A DNA stretch of 64,000 nucleotides from Phallusia mammillata (Eukaryota), in contig OZ281497.1 in the NCBI GenBank assembly GCA_965637545.1, positions 28,830,001 to 28,894,000 on the forward strand. Reading direction: 5' to 3'. The notes below the pieces were generated by a model. It worked only from the letters and a program-made list of their open reading frames with translations. It was not told the DNA's origin and made no database searches. The translations under genes and the position numbers were made by a program. This document shows positions 3,101 through 16,632 of this stretch, one piece after another; position 1 is the stretch's first letter; each line of letters opens with the position of its first letter.

Positions 3101-6100
3101 GGATGATAAACTGCCTTTTGAAGGGGCTGGAAGGTGTGAAATTTACCTGTTGACCTGCGTCTCACCTGCGTCATTTGTTAATTCCACTTCACTGTTGCAA
3201 AACCGGATACATTTGTTGTTTTAACTCATTATTGCTACAAATCTTTAGGTATGTTTTGATACAATGCTGGTCTGTTTGTTTATTCAAACTTTAGACCCCG
3301 TGTTTTTCAATGTTACTTATTTAGGGCCAATTGAGGCATTGTGTTTGTGTTTTGTCATTTCTGTTTTTCCAATTCAATGTTGGGTAACTTATTCAAACTG
3401 TATTTTTGAAGTTTTTTACTTTCCTTAGTTTAAGGAGACCATTTTGGAATTGTAAGGCATAATTGTACATAAATATTACTAAATTGGAGCAACATGATTT
3501 CAGTTGCCCAGGTTTAGATATTAAATACATAGTATATACAATACTGAAAACGACTGTATTTGTGACAAACAATGAAATATATATCTTGCAATTGCAATTA
3601 ATGTTCCAGCATCGAAAATATAAAAATTGTCAAGACACCAAGAAAAATGTTACATTGTTTGTTTAATTCAAAATAATCACTGGAAGTTTTAACTGTTTAT
3701 TAGTTGCTTTCTGGAAACCATATCTTTTCGCGATTTAATTTGTAAAAGTAACAGTTTGCTAATTTTCCATTGGGCACATACTCTTTCCACTGTGCCTGCT
3801 TATACAAACTTGATTTATTAGCGTTGTTTGATTAAGCAAATAATGTGGTTTACAATTGTGAAATCGATGTGACATAAAACCAAGGATAAAGTCCATGACA
3901 GGAACAAACAACTTTAAACTTGAATCAAACATGTTTCAACTTCTTATCTGTTCAGTCTTTTGTTGCTCAATTGTTTAATGTCTGATAAAGTAAGGATGTA
4001 GAACATATATATGGTTACAATGCCATTTTTACAATAATTACTCTGATATATTTCTATGTATATATATATATATATACTTAAGTCTTAAAATAAGAACGTG
4101 CATGCTGGGGGTACAAAGCTATCAAGCTCATATTGTTTTTGAGTAATTAGGATATAATTAAAACAATACTTGATCGCGTTAACCACATACAATTTGTAAC
4201 ATGAAGTGCAATTTGTTAACGCTAGTTGAATTGTTCTGAGTGCCATGTTCGCTTGTTTCAAGTTATCAACTATGGCACTTTTACAAACGAACAAACATGT
4301 TCAGAGGAAGCCACTTGAATGTCGTTGACGCAAAATTGGTTTAAGGCCCGATGCTTGTTACAAGTATTAGTTGTCAAGTAGCTATTGTTGAACAATGAAT
4401 ACTAGCAGAGTCATCGCTCGTGCAAACTGCTTATGTAATTGCTTTTACCAACTCAAAGATCACAATACTTTATCATTGTTTCCAATGAAGCTGTTTCATT
4501 TGTGTTCCTATTTGTCATACAAATGAAACTTTTTTTGTAACATATGTTATGTACACTTGTTGAATCATATTACTATGTTAAGTTTAGAAACTTCTATAAC
4601 TTTCAAATAAAACTGCTTTTGAGTGAAAATGTAGATGTGTTATTTAATATTGTCTCTTTTAATGGTAAGTTGATATCTGTAGCTAACTCAAATTATCAAC
4701 AGTTGCTTTGAAAGTTTGACAAAAAATGTCCATTTTATGCTACAATAATACTTGATCTTCGTAAAAGCTTTTTTGAATGTTGTTTTGAATGCACACTGCT
4801 AAACAGTTGGAGAAATATGTTCTTATTTTTTTGATTACATATATATATTAACAAATTAAGTAGCTGAGCTTTGTATAAGAAAGGGCCAATTTTTTTAGTC
4901 ACTTTGTTGTAGAAAAGCCTTTTGGTCAATATTTTCTTCATTCTCCCCTTCTGAAGAGTGACTCTTAATTAACTCTGCTCAGCCCCTAATCATAATGGCT
5001 CAACCACAAAAGACTGCCGACATGTAATTGTCTTCTTTGTAATGTAGGCCGGGGCAATGGAGCCACAAACCTTCGACAAATCAGACAAAAGCAACGGAGA
5101 CATCTCAAACAACAGCGACGTCTTGCTAACAGAAGCACCGACAATAGCAGGTGAACAATGACACCATATGATTAAAATTGTGTGTGTGTGTCATGTATGA
5201 CTAGTAAGTATTGCTTGTTGAAACATATGACATTTTGTGGTACTGTGTGCACAACATGCTGTGTGCAAATCTTTGAATCAAGAACAGCATTAGGAAATTC
5301 AACCTTCAAAAAACATTTTTTAATTTTTAATTACGGGCCCTTTCAGGCTGTTTCATAAACTTATTTTTTTCCTACTTCAACCTTTTTTACTCTTTCTCTT
5401 TTGACCGAAAAAATGTTTAAACTTCTTTAACCCACAGGCCCTCAAAGAACCTAATTGTTGGGTTATTGCTTAACTGTAAAAACACCATCCTGTGTTACCA
5501 AAACAATCAAGGTTTTGCAATCGTGCTTTAAACCTTGTTTCTGCTAGCGTTATGAAGTGCTCAGAAGTACAATAGTCTAATTATACAATTCAATTGTCAG
5601 TGTGTTTAGGAAAAGAAGCTGTATTTAGAAACTCGAACTTTTATTTAAAGTGTTTTTATTTTTCAGAACTCCCAAACATACCAAACACAGTGATGGCAAT
5701 GGTCATAAGAAGGCTCCCTCTAGTGTTTCATCAAACATTACAAGCGAAAAAGTGACCGTTAATGGCAGCACATCACAAGGAGGTGAAGGCGTTCTCTTCC
5801 GTGTCCCTGTGCTCTATGCTGCCACCGATGGCCTGCATCTCGTCGCTTCCCACAAAACACTTGGGGGCACCAAAGTGGAGCAACGAAAAAGGTGCAAAAA
5901 ATTTTATTGTACGGCTTTCGTCACAAAGTTAGACTTTATGTTTGGCATTCAAAGATGTTTAAATAAATTTGTAAAAGATGGTTACTGTTTGACTGTACTT
6001 AATTTGAAACTAATTACTTATGGGATATTAAAACATTCGACTAATTTGTCTCATGGAAAGTAATAAGCTAGTTTGTTTGGTGAAATAAATCATTACCACA

Positions 6101-7281
6101 ATGGCAACAAAATATTAACCTAATGGTTTAATTAAAAGTTTATTGTTTTCTTCCTTACGCATGCATATGTATATATATGTATATCACTTTTTGTTTCTCA
6201 CTTCAGAAAGAAAACAGGTTCTGATGAGGTGACAACCTGCAGCAGTGGTTCAGTTCCAGCTTTGAATCAAGCCCTCGATCAAACTGGCTCTACCAAGAAA
6301 AGTTTGGAACAAAGTGGAAAAGATTCACCCGGAGTTGATCAACAAGATGATGACCTTCGACCTTCGTCTGTCATTGACAAGCGAGTTGATGTCACCAGCT
6401 CACGAGACGGACTTAATGATTTGCACGATGAGGCTGTGTACATCACGTCAGACATGGATTTAGATGATGACACAGAGTCAGAACTAAATGAATCTGCCAA
6501 CAGTAGAACGCTAATATGGCCACATCATCGAAATTCATCTCCTTTAAAGTCTTCGTCAACTGCAACAGTCATTTCAGCTGCTTCACATGGTTCAAATCGC
6601 AAAACAGTGGTGAATGATACACGACAGTCTCAGCAACATCTCGATTCACTGGTCAGTGTGAGACAGAGTTTTCATTCAGATGAAGAAGATGGAAAAGATC
6701 TAAATGACTCTTCCTCCATCACACATCCACATACTCCCACTCCTCCTCCGGATGAGGAGCCAGCTTTGTTTGTTAAGTCAACATCTCACGGTGTTCAAGA
6801 TTCTGATAGTGATGACACAATAGTCGATAAAACGACTTCCAGAAAACTAACTGTGATGTCTCGAAGGTACAAATCGGTTGCCACGGCCGTTACTAAGCAA
6901 CTACGTCCTTTATCCCAAGGAGGAGGGGACTTCCTTCTGCGATCCAGGGATGCTGGAGATGAGGGGATTTCTAATCATGGATATGAGAGTCCATCAAAGT
7001 TGCAAAGCAAGAGCTCAGAGACTTTAAACAGGGACCATTTTACTAATGCTCACAGCAACAAAGTTCATCCAAATCGCGCAGCTGGTTACCGAAGCGCTTT
7101 CCGCTCTGCAGATGTCCTCCCTTCCTCATCATTGGACCGCTCAGTTTCGTGGGAACAAAAGAATGCAAGTGATTTAATTTTTATTGATCTTGATAAACCT
7201 GCAAGTCCATTGCCAAACACACCTCGATCAACTAACAATCAACCATCGATTGAAACTTTAAATTCACCAAAACAAAGATAG
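137..7281 (+). CDS. Class A (rhodopsin-like) orphan GPCR, 5'-incomplete, with a long Ser/Asp-rich C-terminal tail; weakly GPR161/GPR101-like
   Basis: Phase-consistent GT-AG exons 137-346, 553-670, 1030-1233, 1554-1695, 2218-2539, 5048-5150, 5667-5891, 6207-7281 (stop TAG 7279-7281). Motifs: TM1 LVGNALV, ECL1 RRWMFGE, TM3 IDR|Y split by an intron, TM4 LYTWIHAF, TM5 CLFIP, TM6 FKMPY, TM7 SALYPVL. The first exon in view starts in phase 1, so the start codon is upstream of the window. The GPR161 resemblance is from memory, not from a search. Confidence 0.88.
1797..2109. mobile_element. Degenerate hAT-type MITE remnant in GPCR intron
   Basis: Right end GGTTAAGAACCACTG (2095-2109) resembles the TIRs of other hAT MITEs in the window. 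The left end CAATGGTTTTCA is degenerate and no TSD is seen. Confidence 0.35.
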
Positions 7282-9869: not shown

Positions 9870-10395
9870 CATAGCCTTAGGTTTTTTTTCAAAAATCGGG
9901 GTGAAATTTTCGATTCCGGTTTAAACCGGTTTGGAGGTTCGGTAGGAGGCAGAAACCGACTAAAACCAATTTGTAGCTGGAATATTACGGCGAAATCCCG
10001 CTCAAAACCGGATTTTTCTCCAATTTTTGACCCCCGCAAAATCTGAAAAACGGAAAAGCTATAGCCTTACGGTTTTTTCAAAAATCAGGTTATAATAATC
10101 GGTTTTCGATTCCGGTTTAAACCGGTTTGGACGTTCGGTAGGAGGCAGAAACCGGCAAAAACCACTTTGAAACTTGAATATTCCGGCGAAAACCCGCCCA
10201 AAACCGGATGTTTTCCAATTTTTTGACCCCCAAAATCTGAAAAACGGAAAGGCTATCCGCTTAGGTTTTTTTTCAAAAATCGGGTTATAATAATCGGTTT
10301 TCGATGTCGGTTTGAACCAATTTGGAGGTTCGGTAGGAGGCAGAAACCGGCTAAAACCAGCTTGAAACTTGCATATTCCGGCGAAAATATTCCGG
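9870..10395. repeat. Tandem repeat, ~195-bp unit, about 2.7 copies
   Basis: The anchor CGGTAGGAGGCAGAAACCG recurs at 9940, 10136 and 10331 (spacing 196 and 195). Units share TTTTCAAAAATC and GACCCCC..AAAATCTGAAAAACGGAAA, and two units contain the palindrome CCGGTTTAAACCGG. Confidence 0.9.
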
Positions 10396-10524
10396 AGGTT
10401 GGTCAGGAGGTAGAATGCGATTAAAATCAGTTTTTAACTTTAATATTTCGATAAATTCGCACCCAAATTGAAACTTTCGTCCATTTTGGAGGTCCATAAA
10501 ACCGACGAAACAAATAGGCTTCAC

Positions 10525-11324
10525 CCTTGGTTTCTTTAATTGTTGAACTCCTTCTCTTATTCCCCACTTCATGGAAGGTTTGGTTCCGTCATCTATTCTA
10601 CATCGGAGAATTAGAAACTTTACATGGAACTTGTTTGAGCGATTTTATTGTCTTTATATTACTTAACCTTGGCGACAGGACATTGTCTGTTGGTTTCCAG
10701 AACAATGTGTTGTTTGATACACCTTCACATAAAGATGTTGTTCAGTCGTTTTTAGACAATGAAAAAAGGGTCATTGGCATTTTCAATGTTTATTCAGGAC
10801 CGCGAGGACTGTCACGCATCACTTACGTTGGACTGCGTTGTTTTCCTTCCCGTATGGGCTGTAGAAACAAGATCAGTTTACACACAGAAAAAAAGGTGTT
10901 GAGGTAGACAATCTTTTGTTTTAGGAAAGCAACTTTTGACGCGTTTGGTTAAACAAAAAAAGTTGCAAAAATGTTTGTTATTCAGACCAGTGCTCTTCCG
11001 CCCTGATTGGCGACCCATAAGTAAAAAAGTGCTGCTTCATCTTTATATATAAAGTGACTCAAGCTAGCAGAGTTAAATTGGCAAAGAAGCATAATTGTAT
11101 AGGTTTAGCTTTCACGTCGTGGTATACTTCTTGTCAAGGTTAAAATACCACACGAATGAAGAAGTAACGTTTTTATGAAGTCACCTATAACGTTCACGTT
11201 CATAAGGGCGTATTGACAACATTATTTTACTATTGTGCACTCCATGTTTCGGGCAACAACCATAATCCCCCAAAAGTATTTCCTTTGGTCACAATGGTGG
11301 ATGGGAAGGCCGAGGTTTTAATCT
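10525..11324 (-). CDS. Putative small multi-exon gene (partial model, unknown product; possibly C4orf45/SPMIP2/DUF4562-like)
   Basis: Four GT-AG exons (11231-11324, 10827-10858, 10668-10722, 10525-10597) join in one open frame: IKTSAFPSTIVTKGNTFGGLWLLPETWSAQYPYGKENNAVQRVSNNTLFWKPTDNVLSPRIDDGTKPSMKWGIREGVQQLKKPR. Start and final exons could not be defined. The family resemblance is recalled and unverified. Confidence 0.45.
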
Positions 11325-11720
11325 CTGTAATAGTACAAAATAGCAAAAATATGCATAAAGGCATTACTGAAAGCGCTGCACTAGCCTTCTATGACCCATT
11401 TACAATGCCTCTGTGGCTGTGGGAACGTGTGTATCTGGGCGAAATATTCCGAATAAAAGTCAATCTTTCGAAAGACAGTGTACTGGCAAGACAATTGTTG
11501 TTTGTGCTGTTCCTCTTATTACAAGCAACTCAGACATGACGTACATTACTAAACACAGGATGTTATATTTTGTGGACACTATTCCGTTTAAAAGGTAGCA
11601 TGAAAAGGACTGTATTTCCTTCCAACGTCTAGAATTGCAATAACACAAACAAAGACAGAAGAGGAATTTTGCTGAAGCAGTCCTAAATAAATTTTCTGTT
11701 GACTACCATTTCATCAAAAG

Positions 11721-12046
11721 CAGTGATTTTCTTGCGGTGTTCCGCGAAAAACTAGTTATCCGTGACAGATCGTCAGGTGTTCCGCAAGAAATTTGTCAGT
11801 TTGACTAGCGTTGCATAAAACATCGGTCAAAAATCACTGGTTTTTCACAATGGGCGTACACAGCTTTTCTTTCATGAAAGTAATTGTTCACTTTCACCAG
11901 TTTGAATGCCTTACCGGGATTTGCTTTATTTGATATGTAATATTTAGACTCGTTGTGTAAAAATGAGATTGTGATTGTTTTGGTGTTCTGCAAGATTGTT
12001 TTAATGTATAAAGTGTTCCGTGGATCAAAAAGGTTAAGAAACACTG
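11721..12046. mobile_element. hAT-type MITE (326 bp) upstream of the NLR
   Basis: Ends CAGTGATTTTC and GGTTAAGAAACACTG. Flanks ATCAAAAG (11713-11720) and ATCTAAAG (12047-12054) form a 7/8 TSD. The internal motif GTGTTCCG occurs three times. Confidence 0.6.
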
Positions 12047-12326
12047 ATCTAAAGAGATTCAGTTTTTAACCCTAACTCGTAAAGATTTTTTAATTCGTGG
12101 TTACAGACATTAAGTTATAGAATTACCCCACCGTAGGCGTTTGGAACCGAATATTCACTCAACTAGCTGGTTAAGGGTGTTACAAAAAGATATATGAACC
12201 ACCGGTTTCAATAATTAATATCTTTGTTTCTTCACAGCCAATAGCGTTAACGAAACAGCAGTAGTAACTGACTGTAAAGCAGTTTTCGTGTTTCGTTGTT
12301 AAGCCATCCTCTGTACACAACAACAT

Positions 12327-15300
12327 ATGGCTGAACAAGGCGGCAGCGATGAAGATCAAATTCCACGTGTAAGCGTTGAGTGAATGACTTGGTAAATGCC
12401 AACGAATTTTACAATGTTGTTTTTGGAACAGACACCAAACGAAACAAGCCTGGACTCTATTGTAAACGTATTCACAGGAGACATTCACATACACGAGGCC
12501 GGCGCAGTAGAACAAGTTGGACAATTTGCACATTCGGGTAATTTAGAGCTTGTTTAAAGTGACATTGCGTTGCTTCCAATTCCAACACTATTTGTTGAAA
12601 TGATAACACACAGATGCCACATGGTGAATTTTGTGGTCCTAAATCATAATCTACATAATTCACGTAAAGATAACTCTGTGAAAATCGTGAGCGCTAATAT
12701 TTGTCTAACACAGCGGTTCCCAAACTTTTTCATTTTTTTTTCAAAACGGTCCCTTTGCCATTATTTTGAGGGCTCGCGGTCCTTGAGCCTAAATATGTAT
12801 TTCATAAATACGAAAGTTGATTTCAGGATTTTAGCTAGTTATGCAAAATTGCGCATAAAAGTCATCCAAACACAGCTTGTGACATCACAGACAAGACAAA
12901 TGCACTACAATTGTGCACGAACAATTACATTTTTGATAGTTGTCATTCAATAAAGACCATTGTTTAGCAATGGAGACAGTCGATTCTCAATTCTACTTTG
13001 ATTTAAACTTATTTAGTGGCACAAACTGACGCCAAATAAGATTATAGAATTACTTCAACCGCTTCGCGGTCCCCCCAAAATTGCTTCACGGACCCCTAAA
13101 GGACCGCGGACCCCAGTTTGGGAACCGCTGGTCTAACAGAAGTCTAACAAAAACTGAACAAAATCAAAAATTGAATGAAAAAAATTACTCCTTGTGCAAA
13201 ATCCCCATTCAAATTGTCTATTAAGTCATGATCCACTAACTGTGCCCTCCACTACTTTGCGCTTCTTAACATTTCAACGTTGCGTAGCTATTTTCGGCTT
13301 GCTGATTGTTTCAGTGCAAAGTTTACGTTATGTCCTCTTTTCACCGAGCAAATAAACTTAAAACACCATTTATTTTTAGATGCTGAGCGCCTGAAGCGAC
13401 AACTGCTAGATCATGCCGATTCGTGCGGGGATTTCCCACATCCGATACCCCTGGAGTGCGTCCCTCAAGTGGCTGAACTTGAACTAAGCAGCAAAATCTC
13501 CGCCAGTGAACGAGAAAGCGAAGGAGAACGAGCCAATATTAGAGACGGAGATATCCGTTTGGGAGATATTTTCGTCAGAGCAAAGGAAAAAACTGTTGCA
13601 GCGAGTCGGTGTAGATGCAGAAGCAACGTTGCTAGGAAACAGTTTGAAGAGAAACATGGAAACGTGGTGGGAGTGGTCGGCCAAGCGGGAATCGGAAAAA
13701 CTTTCCTAACCAAGATCTTCCTAGCGCAAGTGTTGCTGGGCTGCATCGTCCCTGTCGTTTCCTTTGTCTTTTACATTCCCGTGAGGAGGATCAACTTCTC
13801 GGATGAGACAAATCTTCTTCAGATGCTGGTGACTCCGTGTCTTCCGTCATGGAGGCACATCCGCTCTTCTGATGAGGATATTCTCATGTACATGAATGAC
13901 GACCCCAACGTTTTGATTATTTTCGATGGTTTGGACGAAGTTCCAGCAGTTTCTTTATCAGGCAGCGTCCACAATGTTTGCCTCTATGACAAAGCTCCAG
14001 CGCTTGTTTTCATCAAAAACATTCTGGGAGGAAACCTTCTCCCGCGGGCCAAGAAGCTAGTCACATGCCGTACGAGGCAATTTCTCGAGCTCGAAAGCGA
14101 GTTTCTTCCGATTTTGGTTGTTGAGATTCTTGGTTTTAGCTGCGAGACTCGAGACCGACTTTGTAGGGAAATATGCGGAAATGAAAAGTCTGCATTTGTG
14201 TTGGAAGTTTTAAACAGGAACCCAAGTCTAACTGCACAATGTCACGTCCCTGTAAACTGTGTGCTAATATTCGCTTACATGTTGGAAAACTTTGAGCGTG
14301 TTAGACTAAGCCCGATGCTTCCTATGTCGGATGTTTTAACGTCAACGTTTATGGATTTTTCGAGGTCTGCACACGCAAATAAGTCCCATTCAAATTTAAC
14401 TGAGGCGGATTTCAGGAATTTGAGCAAGTTTGCGTGGCAAATGATACGCGAGAAAAAGTTTTTGTTCGTCAAAACTGACTTTCAAGCCTTCAACCTTGAC
14501 GGGAAAAAGCTAGAAGCTTTTCTCACAACAACTATAACCAGGCAAACAAATATCAACATTCGTATCTTCGAGGGAGAAAAAAAGAGCTACTTTTCACATC
14601 TTATCTGGCAGGAATTTCTCTCTGCCGTTTACCTTATGGCAGTTTGCAGTCCAACCGACTTCGAGTTATGCCTTCCAGAGCTAAGCAAGGGCAGATGGGA
14701 AGTAGTGGCTAAATTTGTATTCGGTCTTTGCAACCAAATCACGTTTGAAATGCTCCAACCGATTTTCGACACGTCAGCAACCGACATTGCCACCAAGCGG
14801 TTAATGTTGGTCAACTTTCTCGAAAATCACATGCATCACTTTTCGACCCTTGATCCTTCACCCCAGTTTCTTCGCGTGTGCTCGTGGGCGTGTGAAGCGA
14901 ACCATGACGATATCGTCGCCGTGGTAACCGAATACATGCCTCTGGAGATTAAACTCAACGGGTCAATTCTCCCAACTGACGTCGTAGCGTTGTGTTACGT
15001 AATGAGAGCGTCATCGCGTGTTCGACCCCGCCAACCCGCTTTCCGGGCACTGCGGAGCTGTAGGTTTGTGGCTGATAGCTTCGAAAGACTGACTCAAGAA
15101 ATTGCGCATTCCATCAAGGTGATTTGATTCATTTTTATCCCGAATGTACAAACAATCCACACAATACCTCATAGACCACCAGACTGCTAAATTTCTTTTT
15201 GTAAGTTTTTTTTTCAAGTTTAGTCGCTGATGTAAATCACTGCGATCGTTTAAGTTTTGTATTTTGCAATTTGAAACTGAACCGGGGTGAGCGGGATTAG

Positions 15301-16632
15301 AACCACAACCTTTGCGACCACATTCACATCATCAGCGTTTTGTGATTCTTTTGTTGTATTTTGATTTTTTTCTCAGGTCACTTATTTCAATCTTTATCGC
15401 ATCGGAAACGACAAGGCTCGTCAACTTGCCAATTGCATCCACAACATTAGTGAGCTGAACATTTCACAATGCCTCATCACAGAAGAGGGTATGAGGTATC
15501 TGGCACAAGCCCTGGGGCGTATGGATCATCAGGTATAAGTGTGAGGGTCAAGTTTGACATTTTACTTTCGTTAATATGCTGCGTCACAATAATAGACATT
15601 AAATCTATTTAGATTACAAAAAAAGCAGGAAAAATGACTGAAAGCAACAGTAAAAACCCGGTCCATAAATATAGATTCACTTATTTATGATTTGTTACCA
15701 GATATTAATTCAAAAAGTTTTTGGGGATGACAGCCTTCTAACTTTATTTAATAGACAAAGGTCGAATGTAGCCAAAGCTTTTATTCACTTAGCCGGTGAA
15801 GTTAATTAAGTTCAATTGCAGATACAAAGTCACACCAAAACATTGGATGAATAATGTTCGACCACCAATTCAATAAGAAAAGCGGTTTTGTGTAAGCTAG
15901 AAAGTTGACGTCAGCTTTATTTTTACACAGATTGAACACATCAACCTGGGCAACAATTACATCGGACTCGAAGGATGCCGTCATCTGGCGCAATGTCTCG
16001 AAAAAGTCCAAGAGCTCAACCTGAGGCAATGTCAATTGAATGATGAATGTGTGGCGGTCTTGGTGGATGGAACTCGGGCGTCTACAATGCCGGTGAGTAT
16101 TCAATTTTGAAAAAAAGTTAACTTACTTGGCAAAGCGGTAGGGTATAAATCTTGTCAATGTCAACCTATTAGAGGTGGGAAATATTGAAGAAGAATCCAA
16201 TTGCGTGAAAATAGAGAAAAGGATAAGTGGGTTGAATAACTGAGTCAGAAAAGGCGCCAGAAAGGAAAACAAAAAAGACTGAGATTTCGAATACCAGGTC
16301 AAGGTCAACAAGCAAATTCCACGGTGGTTTGGTGCACCCAGAGTAACCAACTTTTAGGGGAGGTGGTGGTTATCAGTCGAGGGGTGCTAGAAGCTAAGAA
16401 CCCATGATTTAGAATTAAGACTTAAAGTATTTGTTCAACGCAGCTAAAGCTATTGGATCTTTCTCTCAACGACATTACTGATATGGGCGCTCGTCTCTTG
16501 ATTCCAGTACTTCACAAAATTATCAACATCAACTTGGCCATGTGCAATATATCCGATGCCGTAGCGTTGGAAATAAGAGAAAAGCGGAGACAAGTTGGTC
16601 TGGATGAAGAATGTGGACTCGTTACTTTATAA
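12327..16632 (+). CDS. NLR (NACHT + ribonuclease-inhibitor-type LRRs), 797 aa, short N-terminus without a death fold
   Basis: Exons 12327-12368, 12432-12537, 13380-15118, 15377-15532, 15931-16092, 16444-16632 (stop TAA 16630-16632), all phase-consistent, with an in-frame TAA at 12300-12302 upstream of the ATG. Walker A GQAGIGKT, Walker B IIFDGLDE, sensor-1 LVTCR, winged-helix FSHLIWQEF, HD2 WEVVAKFVFGL, and three LRR exons of about two repeats each. The NACHT and LRR exons are very secure; the two small 5' exons are inferred from splice-phase fit. Confidence 0.9.
12711..13130. mobile_element. hAT (Charlie-like) MITE, 420 bp, in NLR intron 2
   Basis: Perfect 16-bp TIRs CAGCGGTTCCCAAACT / AGTTTGGGAACCGCTG and a perfect 8-bp TSD GTCTAACA (12703-12710, 13131-13138). 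No transposase ORF. Confidence 0.95.

Follow-up and report, generated by a model that had tools for sequence, protein, structure and literature searches.

The window analysed here, a stretch of 64,000 nucleotides at C4:28830001-28894000 of the 240-Mb genome of the ascidian Phallusia mammillata, contains a gene for a NACHT and leucine-rich repeat (LRR) receptor of the NLR family, hereafter the focal gene, which opens with a 49-residue N-terminus encoded by two small exons. An earlier reading of the bare sequence, the original prediction, had taken this peptide for a RHIM-like amyloid motif replacing the death-fold domain of an invertebrate-chordate NLR. The ascidian source bears out the proposed origin; the motif itself is a different one. 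Judged by alignment and pattern searches, the peptide is a diverged member of an N-terminal motif family of P. mammillata, carried on a phase-1 exon before the NACHT domain, and the best-supported interpretation is that the family constitutes a lineage-specific NLR signalling motif standing in for the death fold. Locus (L) and protein (P) numbers used below are those of this analysis.

The focal gene was modelled as six exons (Table 1), all joined in phase through GT-AG introns to give a 2394-nt open reading frame (ORF) that encodes 797 aa and has its only stop at the end. The two small exons, the in-frame stop upstream of them and the in-phase splice to the pre-NACHT segment lie exactly where they had been predicted, and yield the predicted peptide. 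Exon 3 matches the Pfam models NACHT (1.5e-22), NOD2_WH (1.2e-5) and NLRC4_HD2 (2.9e-5), and the Walker A motif GQAGIGKT stands at residue 150. The C-terminal LRRs complete the architecture, the LRR_6 scores of exons 5 and 6 being under the cut-off with each exon scanned singly. With its ATPase, winged helix and helical domain, and C-terminal LRRs, the focal gene is a NACHT-LRR receptor.

Table 1. Features of the focal NLR gene (window coordinates) and motif and kinase exons of the candidate partner locus L035 (L035 coordinates)
Feature	Position	Strand	Description
In-frame TAA stop	12300..12302	+	27 nt before the start codon; read from the sequence
Exon 1	12327..12368	+	14 codons from ATG, MAEQGGSDEDQIPR, acidic leader; donor GTAAGC
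Intron 1	12369..12431	+	63 nt, GT..AG
Exon 2	12432..12537	+	35 codons and 1 base, phase 1 end, TPNETSLDSIVNVFTGDIHIHEAGAVEQVGQFAHS; AG acceptor, donor GTAATT
Motif core GDIHIHEAGAV	12477..12509	+	matches GDxxIHxxGxV; aligned with paralog GDTNIHTTGPV
Intron 2	12538..13379	+	842 nt, GT..AG; contains a repeat of ~420 bp resembling a miniature inverted-repeat transposable element (MITE)
Exon 3	13380..15118	+	AG acceptor, phase 1 entry; pre-NACHT segment, NACHT ATPase, winged helix, HD2
Exon 4	15377..15532	+	RI-type LRR, phase 0 to 0; LRR by inspection, no Pfam match
Exon 5	15931..16092	+	RI-type LRR; LRR_6 5e-4
Exon 6	16444..16632	+	last LRR and TAA stop; LRR_6 4e-4; no enzyme domain after
L035 motif exon	4817-5078		
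L035 linker exon	4606-4754		
L035 first kinase exon	4209-4399		

As had been claimed, no CARD, PYD or death domain is found at the N-terminus of the focal protein. The first 114 aa gave no Pfam match at E ≤ 10. A genome-wide Pfam search, in which the death effector domain was not searched separately, gave 8 matches to Death, 5 to CARD and 0 to PYRIN, all of them outside the NLR cluster, which spans C4 23.8-30.6 Mb. The cluster itself, of about 7 Mb, houses most of the 75 NACHT paralogs scored (all at E ≤ 7.5e-82) among 301 first-look candidates found genome-wide with the focal NACHT exon. A cluster of NLRs free of death folds agrees with the published survey of ascidian NLRs, which describes them as ‘NLRC without CARD’, NACHT-LRR or NACHT only, with the N-terminal effector domain absent (PMC11508797). 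Within this repertoire the focal gene is an outlier, sharing only 33-39% NACHT identity with every scored paralog.

Translation of the 1.5 kb upstream of the paralog NACHT exons revealed a near-invariant stretch, ..DKAEAPQ-FGDTNIHTTGPVYNAPV-ELHQHNYY.., with the consensus [FI]GDT(N/I)(I/T)HTTGPV[YF]NAPV. A degenerate DNA pattern for HTTGPV[YF]NAPV occurs at 73 genomic sites and at none in a reversed control. At the protein level the motif was found at 78 sites, every one of them within NLR clusters on C4, C3 and C2, and this genome-wide search returned no copy beyond these clusters. For 51 of the 73 DNA-pattern sites, a listed NACHT exon follows at a distance of 200-1500 bp. Of a further 20 that we fetched (C4:26063181 and C4:26603754 were left out of inspection), a clear NACHT match is present in 14 and just a short fragment in one more, L045. 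The copies thus nearly always stand directly before a NACHT exon. The motif precedes the NACHT domain in at least 70 paralogs.

The motif also appears to be held in place by selection. In gene pairs with 55-70% NACHT identity (mean 0.66), identity reaches 0.76 in the 17-aa core and falls to 0.37 in the next 30 aa. The pooled ratio of nonsynonymous to synonymous proportions of differences (pN/pS) comes to 0.32 in the core, against 0.57 in the flanking sequence. These pairs are interdependent, and the family expanded rather recently, with NACHT identities of 55-100%. The values are supportive rather than strong evidence for a tighter constraint on the core than on the sequence beside it. For one paralog the N-terminus is known from a transcript: UniProt A0A6F9DMZ7 (‘COS1.5’, P. 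mammillata, cDNA-derived; our P0018) corresponds to two exons of L041 with 100% identity over all 696 residues, and hence this N-terminus is transcribed with the motif and without a death fold. AlphaFold2, run on a 37-row alignment with the P0018 segment as target, returned a predicted template modelling score (pTM) of 0.15, a mean per-residue confidence (pLDDT) of 63 and zero secondary structure, which excludes a hidden globular domain in the motif segment. A low-complexity tether joins this disordered segment to the NACHT domain. A four-copy fold of exon 2 scored 0.02; it gave no answer and counts neither way.

When the motif region of P0018 was searched against database proteins of 383-1218 aa, it matched P0018 itself and nothing else; a separate search with the motif region of the Clavelina protein P0004 among proteins of 555-1765 aa returned NLR paralogs alone; and the ESM Atlas offered no usable look-alikes of the motif region. 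A TRAF-binding reading of APQFGD was ruled out, the Q not being conserved.

The focal peptide falls into this family. Its GDIHIHEAGAV shares six of 11 positions with GDTNIHTTGPV, it aligns in register under MAFFT, and both glycines are invariant in all 37 aligned sequences. Against a hidden Markov model (HMM) of the paralog core it scores 7.0 bits, a value reached by 6 of 5000 and by 2 of 2000 composition-preserving shuffles. The pattern GDxxIHxxGxV, searched genome-wide, gave 38 matches and two in the reversed control: 36 are paralog motifs, one is the focal exon (C4:28842477-28842508, window 12477-12508, the DNA pattern covering the Val codon only up to its second base); the remaining one is on C5. 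This stray match, GDTAIHRYGMV at C5:10536969-10537000, is the sole match outside the NLR clusters and, with about two matches expected by chance from the control, is probably a chance occurrence. The gene structure agrees: in L004, the nearest paralog, one exon of 48 aa makes up the N-terminus; it ends ‘AAA G|GTAAGT’ and is joined to the NACHT exon in phase 1, as in the focal gene. Exon 2 is the counterpart of the paralogs’ motif exon. The expectation that a short N-terminal segment would be conserved among paralogs is thus borne out, by alignment, pattern and shuffles, for GDIHIH..G.V.

The RHIM resemblance did not survive the same comparison. The Pfam RHIM model (PF12721) has zero matches on the focal peptide at E ≤ 10 and zero on the 37 paralog motif segments, the cDNA-derived P0018 among them; its best score anywhere in the genome, 16.5 bits against a cut-off of 20, is located outside the NLR clusters. 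RHIM, PP and BASS3 motifs have in common a G-phi-Q-phi-G, (I/V)-Q-(I/V/L)-G core (bioRxiv 10.1101/2020.01.06.895854). The focal G-A-V-E-Q-V-G has one residue too many for this signature, so that the likeness to BASS3 claimed alongside that to RHIM falls with it, and the paralogs read G-P-V-Y-N-A-P at the aligned place. Since the paralogs have PVYNAPV where the focal peptide has AVEQVG, the RHIM-like part is the unconserved part. From these comparisons, the motif is a sequence family distinct from RHIM.

A possible partner emerged within the NLR cluster. L035 (C4:24763400-24770500, minus strand) has a motif site without a NACHT exon: downstream of its motif exon, FGEKFAHTTGPVYNAPV (..PHFGEKFAHTTGPVYNAPVEIHHHH..NEKCED), come exons for a protein kinase (Pfam Pkinase 8.5e-27). 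The model comprises eight exons and ~545 aa; seven were spliced by script, all GT-AG and in phase, to give 489 aa, and the terminal exon of 56 aa was derived by hand from the sequence. The 5' exons are of NLR type, and the kinase motifs VAK, HGD, DFG and SPE are intact. An NLR gene in L034 has a homologous 5' region and motif exon, but L035 lacks the 2.75 kb in which the NACHT exon lies there. Compared with its L034 paralog the kinase shows 65% identity, a synonymous proportion (pS) of 0.63 and a pN/pS of 0.29, indicating that it has been maintained as coding sequence. The first kinase exon of L034 starts cag|ATG; the same codon is GTT in L035, which would require an upstream start. Whether L035 encodes a putative motif-kinase fusion protein is nonetheless close to an even call. 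Its best solved relatives (about 1e-14 to 1e-17) are TYK2, SNF1-type kinases, FERONIA and RIPK2, and on these matches the kinase is not clearly a RIPK. Among 1.84 billion representatives, no relative of the kinase exceeded 45% identity and none was motif-bearing, some having Kelch repeats or other domains. The original prediction had implied a partner elsewhere in the genome with a matching motif; this stands insofar as a motif of the family type lies on the L035 kinase gene, and fails insofar as no cognate of the focal variant was found genome-wide.

L035 is part of a sub-cluster in which eight kinase paralogs are interleaved with NLRs on the same strand (C4 24.69-24.83 Mb). The kinases follow NACHT exons by 1.3-1.7 kb, too little space for LRR exons, and on inspection of two of the eight loci the NACHT and kinase parts may form either a fusion or a two-gene operon. 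A further locus, L043 (C4:24795900-24803000, plus strand), has a motif exon and, after it, a NACHT exon that has lost the ATPase core, so that the pre-NACHT segment runs directly into the end of HD2. Further 3' are an LRR exon and kinase exons that by eye are IRE1/RNase L-like; Pfam reports Pkinase alone (1e-15), the supposed KEN-like exon having no match.

How might such a motif act? A short conserved motif at the N-terminus of a NACHT or NB-ARC protein, with disordered flanks and no effector domain, is what characterizes NLR-associated amyloid motifs of fungal and bacterial type (about 20-40 aa), and this arrangement is found here. A homotypic or amyloid-like action of the ascidian motif is plausible. 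We tentatively favor like-with-like association that recruits a motif-bearing partner, while granting it somewhat less than an even chance. In the resting monomer, the motif would be disordered. Ligand-bound NACHT domains would oligomerise, whereupon the clustered motifs would associate strand against strand and recruit a protein with the same motif, for which the one candidate seen is the L035 kinase. The motif would thereby replace CARD, PYD or death domain as homotypic adaptor. It is tempting to speculate further that ascidians evolved a templating motif of their own, whose amyloid-like homotypic assembly links a greatly expanded set of NLRs to a kinase with the same motif, with the focal gene as an old, diverged member still joining the filament; this stronger version we regard as rather unlikely.

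Several observations weigh against recruitment of this kind, and against a place for the focal protein in it. A six-frame genome search with the 49-aa peptide returned the gene itself alone; with no second genomic copy of its variant, the focal protein lacks an exact cognate. The focal splice junctions have no RNA support, the contigs of four putative RNA runs on window positions 10200-16100 covering only the repeat in intron 2 (12711-13136, at high summed depth). A likeness by eye to the N-termini of L004, P0025 and the Clavelina NLRs P0001, P0004 and P0007 had to be rejected, their motif HMM scores being no better than those of shuffles, and so the motif is not ascidian-wide. Because the paralogs are as close as their NACHT identities indicate, its conservation stems partly from recent duplication. 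L035 could instead be an NLR remnant beside a kinase gene that starts at the linker-exon Met. Finally, other NLRs appear to carry enzymes in cis (a kinase, or a kinase and RNase), which makes a separate recruited effector less necessary.

Of the other explanations, the one that fares best makes the motif a linear docking site. A downstream factor, such as one of the cluster kinases, a protease or a ubiquitin ligase, would recognize it through a folded domain, and neither homotypic nor amyloid-like assembly would take part. The short, disordered and strongly conserved core would suit this, as would the confinement of the motif to NLR clusters with a single non-NACHT carrier candidate, and the kinase paralogs adjoining NLRs. 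Yet 17 near-invariant residues are long for a docking motif, no candidate reader domain has been identified, and the occurrence of the motif on the L035 kinase gene is better suited to like-with-like pairing. It is this occurrence, together with the length, that leads us to prefer like-with-like association and to consider a docking site possible though doubtful. Were it true, the first downstream link of this receptor family would have been identified.

A different objection concerns the focal gene alone, whose N-terminus may be a decayed, functionless remnant or a mis-modelled 5' end, with signalling through NACHT-LRR alone or in hetero-oligomers with paralogs. The outlying NACHT, the six of 11 core positions kept, the missing cognate copy and the lack of RNA support at the junctions are in keeping with this. 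Furthermore, an AG at 12302-12303, preceded by a pyrimidine-rich run and lying just 5' of the ATG, could accept a further 5' exon; it could also be an acceptor for trans-splicing or for a 5' untranslated region. However, the residues retained are exactly those invariant in the family, all six exons are open with canonical sites, and L004 has a comparably short one-exon N-terminus and phase-1 junction. The upstream neighbor is moreover a separate gene ending near 7.3 kb, and the region contains no death-fold exon. Decay or mis-modelling is unlikely in our judgment.

Still less probable is a regulatory role in cis, whether as an autoinhibitory peptide packing on the NACHT or LRR at rest or as a protease tripwire. 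There is a mammalian precedent in NLRP1, where the disordered N-terminal region is a protease sensor, and the ascidian segment is similarly disordered and tethered through low-complexity sequence to the NACHT. Tripwires evolve fast, yet the core is the most conserved part of this N-terminus, and the motif has been kept both in L035, which has no NACHT, and in L043, whose NACHT has lost its ATPase core. Last, that the peptide is after all a RHIM, BASS3 or PP-type motif nucleating RHIM filaments is very improbable: its position equals that of the RHIM in an amphioxus RHIM-NACHT protein and AGAVEQVG misses the signature by one extra residue, but the RHIM model is silent, the supposed core is replaced in the paralogs and published profile searches found no tunicate RHIM (PMC4262963).

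The like-with-like interpretation invites comparison with known systems. RHIM-NACHT proteins such as BF82280 are present in amphioxus, and tunicates appear to lack RHIMs in profile searches (Kajava et al. 2014, PMC4262963). Like the focal gene, BF82280 is an invertebrate-chordate NLR with a short, non-globular motif at the death-fold position, so that an animal NLR in which such a motif replaces the death fold is not new in kind. The amphioxus motif is, however, a profile-detectable RHIM, whereas the ascidian motif fails the RHIM model and is without the phi-Q-phi-G core. The fungal pairs (NWD2/HET-S, PNT1/HELLP and sigma) and bacterial BASS motifs similarly combine a short motif N-terminal to NACHT or NB-ARC, within disordered flanks, with a matching motif on a putative executor encoded nearby, for which L035, inside the NLR cluster, is the candidate here. 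In those systems the effector bears its motif C-terminally and is a pore-former or an enzyme of a different kind, whereas L035 has an N-terminal motif and a kinase; the ascidian motif matches neither HET-s, PP nor RHIM in Pfam, and the pairing is a candidate one known from sequence. In mammals, the RHIM couples RIPK1 and RIPK3; here, too, one short motif common to both sides would join a kinase to a sensor or adaptor. The L035 kinase differs in its doubtful kinship to RIPK and in its motif, which precedes the kinase and is of a non-RHIM type, and RIPK1 homologues are reported absent from tunicates (PMC12119088). The ‘NLRC without CARD’ genes of ascidians belong to the same gene family and have no N-terminal effector domain; the survey treats their N-terminus as absent (PMC11508797), unlike the conserved and apparently selected motif found here in the P. 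mammillata expansion.

For ascidian NLR signalling, a motif in more than 70 NLRs and on a kinase gene offers a concrete handle, consisting of a defined peptide and a defined candidate partner. If the motif is a templating element, NLR signalling by short motifs would extend from fungi, bacteria and amphioxus to a second chordate lineage, where the sequence is unrelated. Coupling of receptors to the kinase by amyloid-like assembly, if real, would add a third independent animal solution to the death folds and the RHIM, and would give NWD2/HET-S and BASS a parallel among metazoans.

Variation around the motif deserves mention. In two NLR paralogs, L017 (C4:26419156-26423643) and L018 (C4:26450688-26455175), a His run, FGDTHHHHYHFNLV, takes the place of the motif core and is a natural deletion variant of the motif. 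The exon preceding the motif exon (e.g. in L008, L014 and L034) closes with a second short conserved element, (E)N(K/Q)VINIV(G/R)N, which splicing places ~10 residues away from FGDT. To judge by eye, its counterpart in the focal peptide may be SIVNVF, directly before TGD. In L052 (C4:23864700-23871800) an orphan motif exon at 3107-3319 has no NACHT downstream. Behind it comes an exon for a CUE domain (Pfam CUE 2.5e-14), whose splice phase does not fit that of the motif exon and which hence probably belongs to a neighboring gene.

Elsewhere in the window, the MITE-like repeat in intron 2 (12711-13131) has terminal inverted repeats CAGCGGTTCCCAAAC and GTTTGGGAACCGCTG, and the high summed depth of the RNA-run contigs on it suggests that it is multi-copy and possibly transcribed. 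The upstream neighbor, a different gene, comprises exons at 157-2583 resembling those of seven-transmembrane, G-protein-coupled receptors and a Ser-rich ORF of 350 aa at 6229-7281. Downstream of the focal gene, the minus strand between 18300 and 23000 carries ORFs that by eye are FN3-like.

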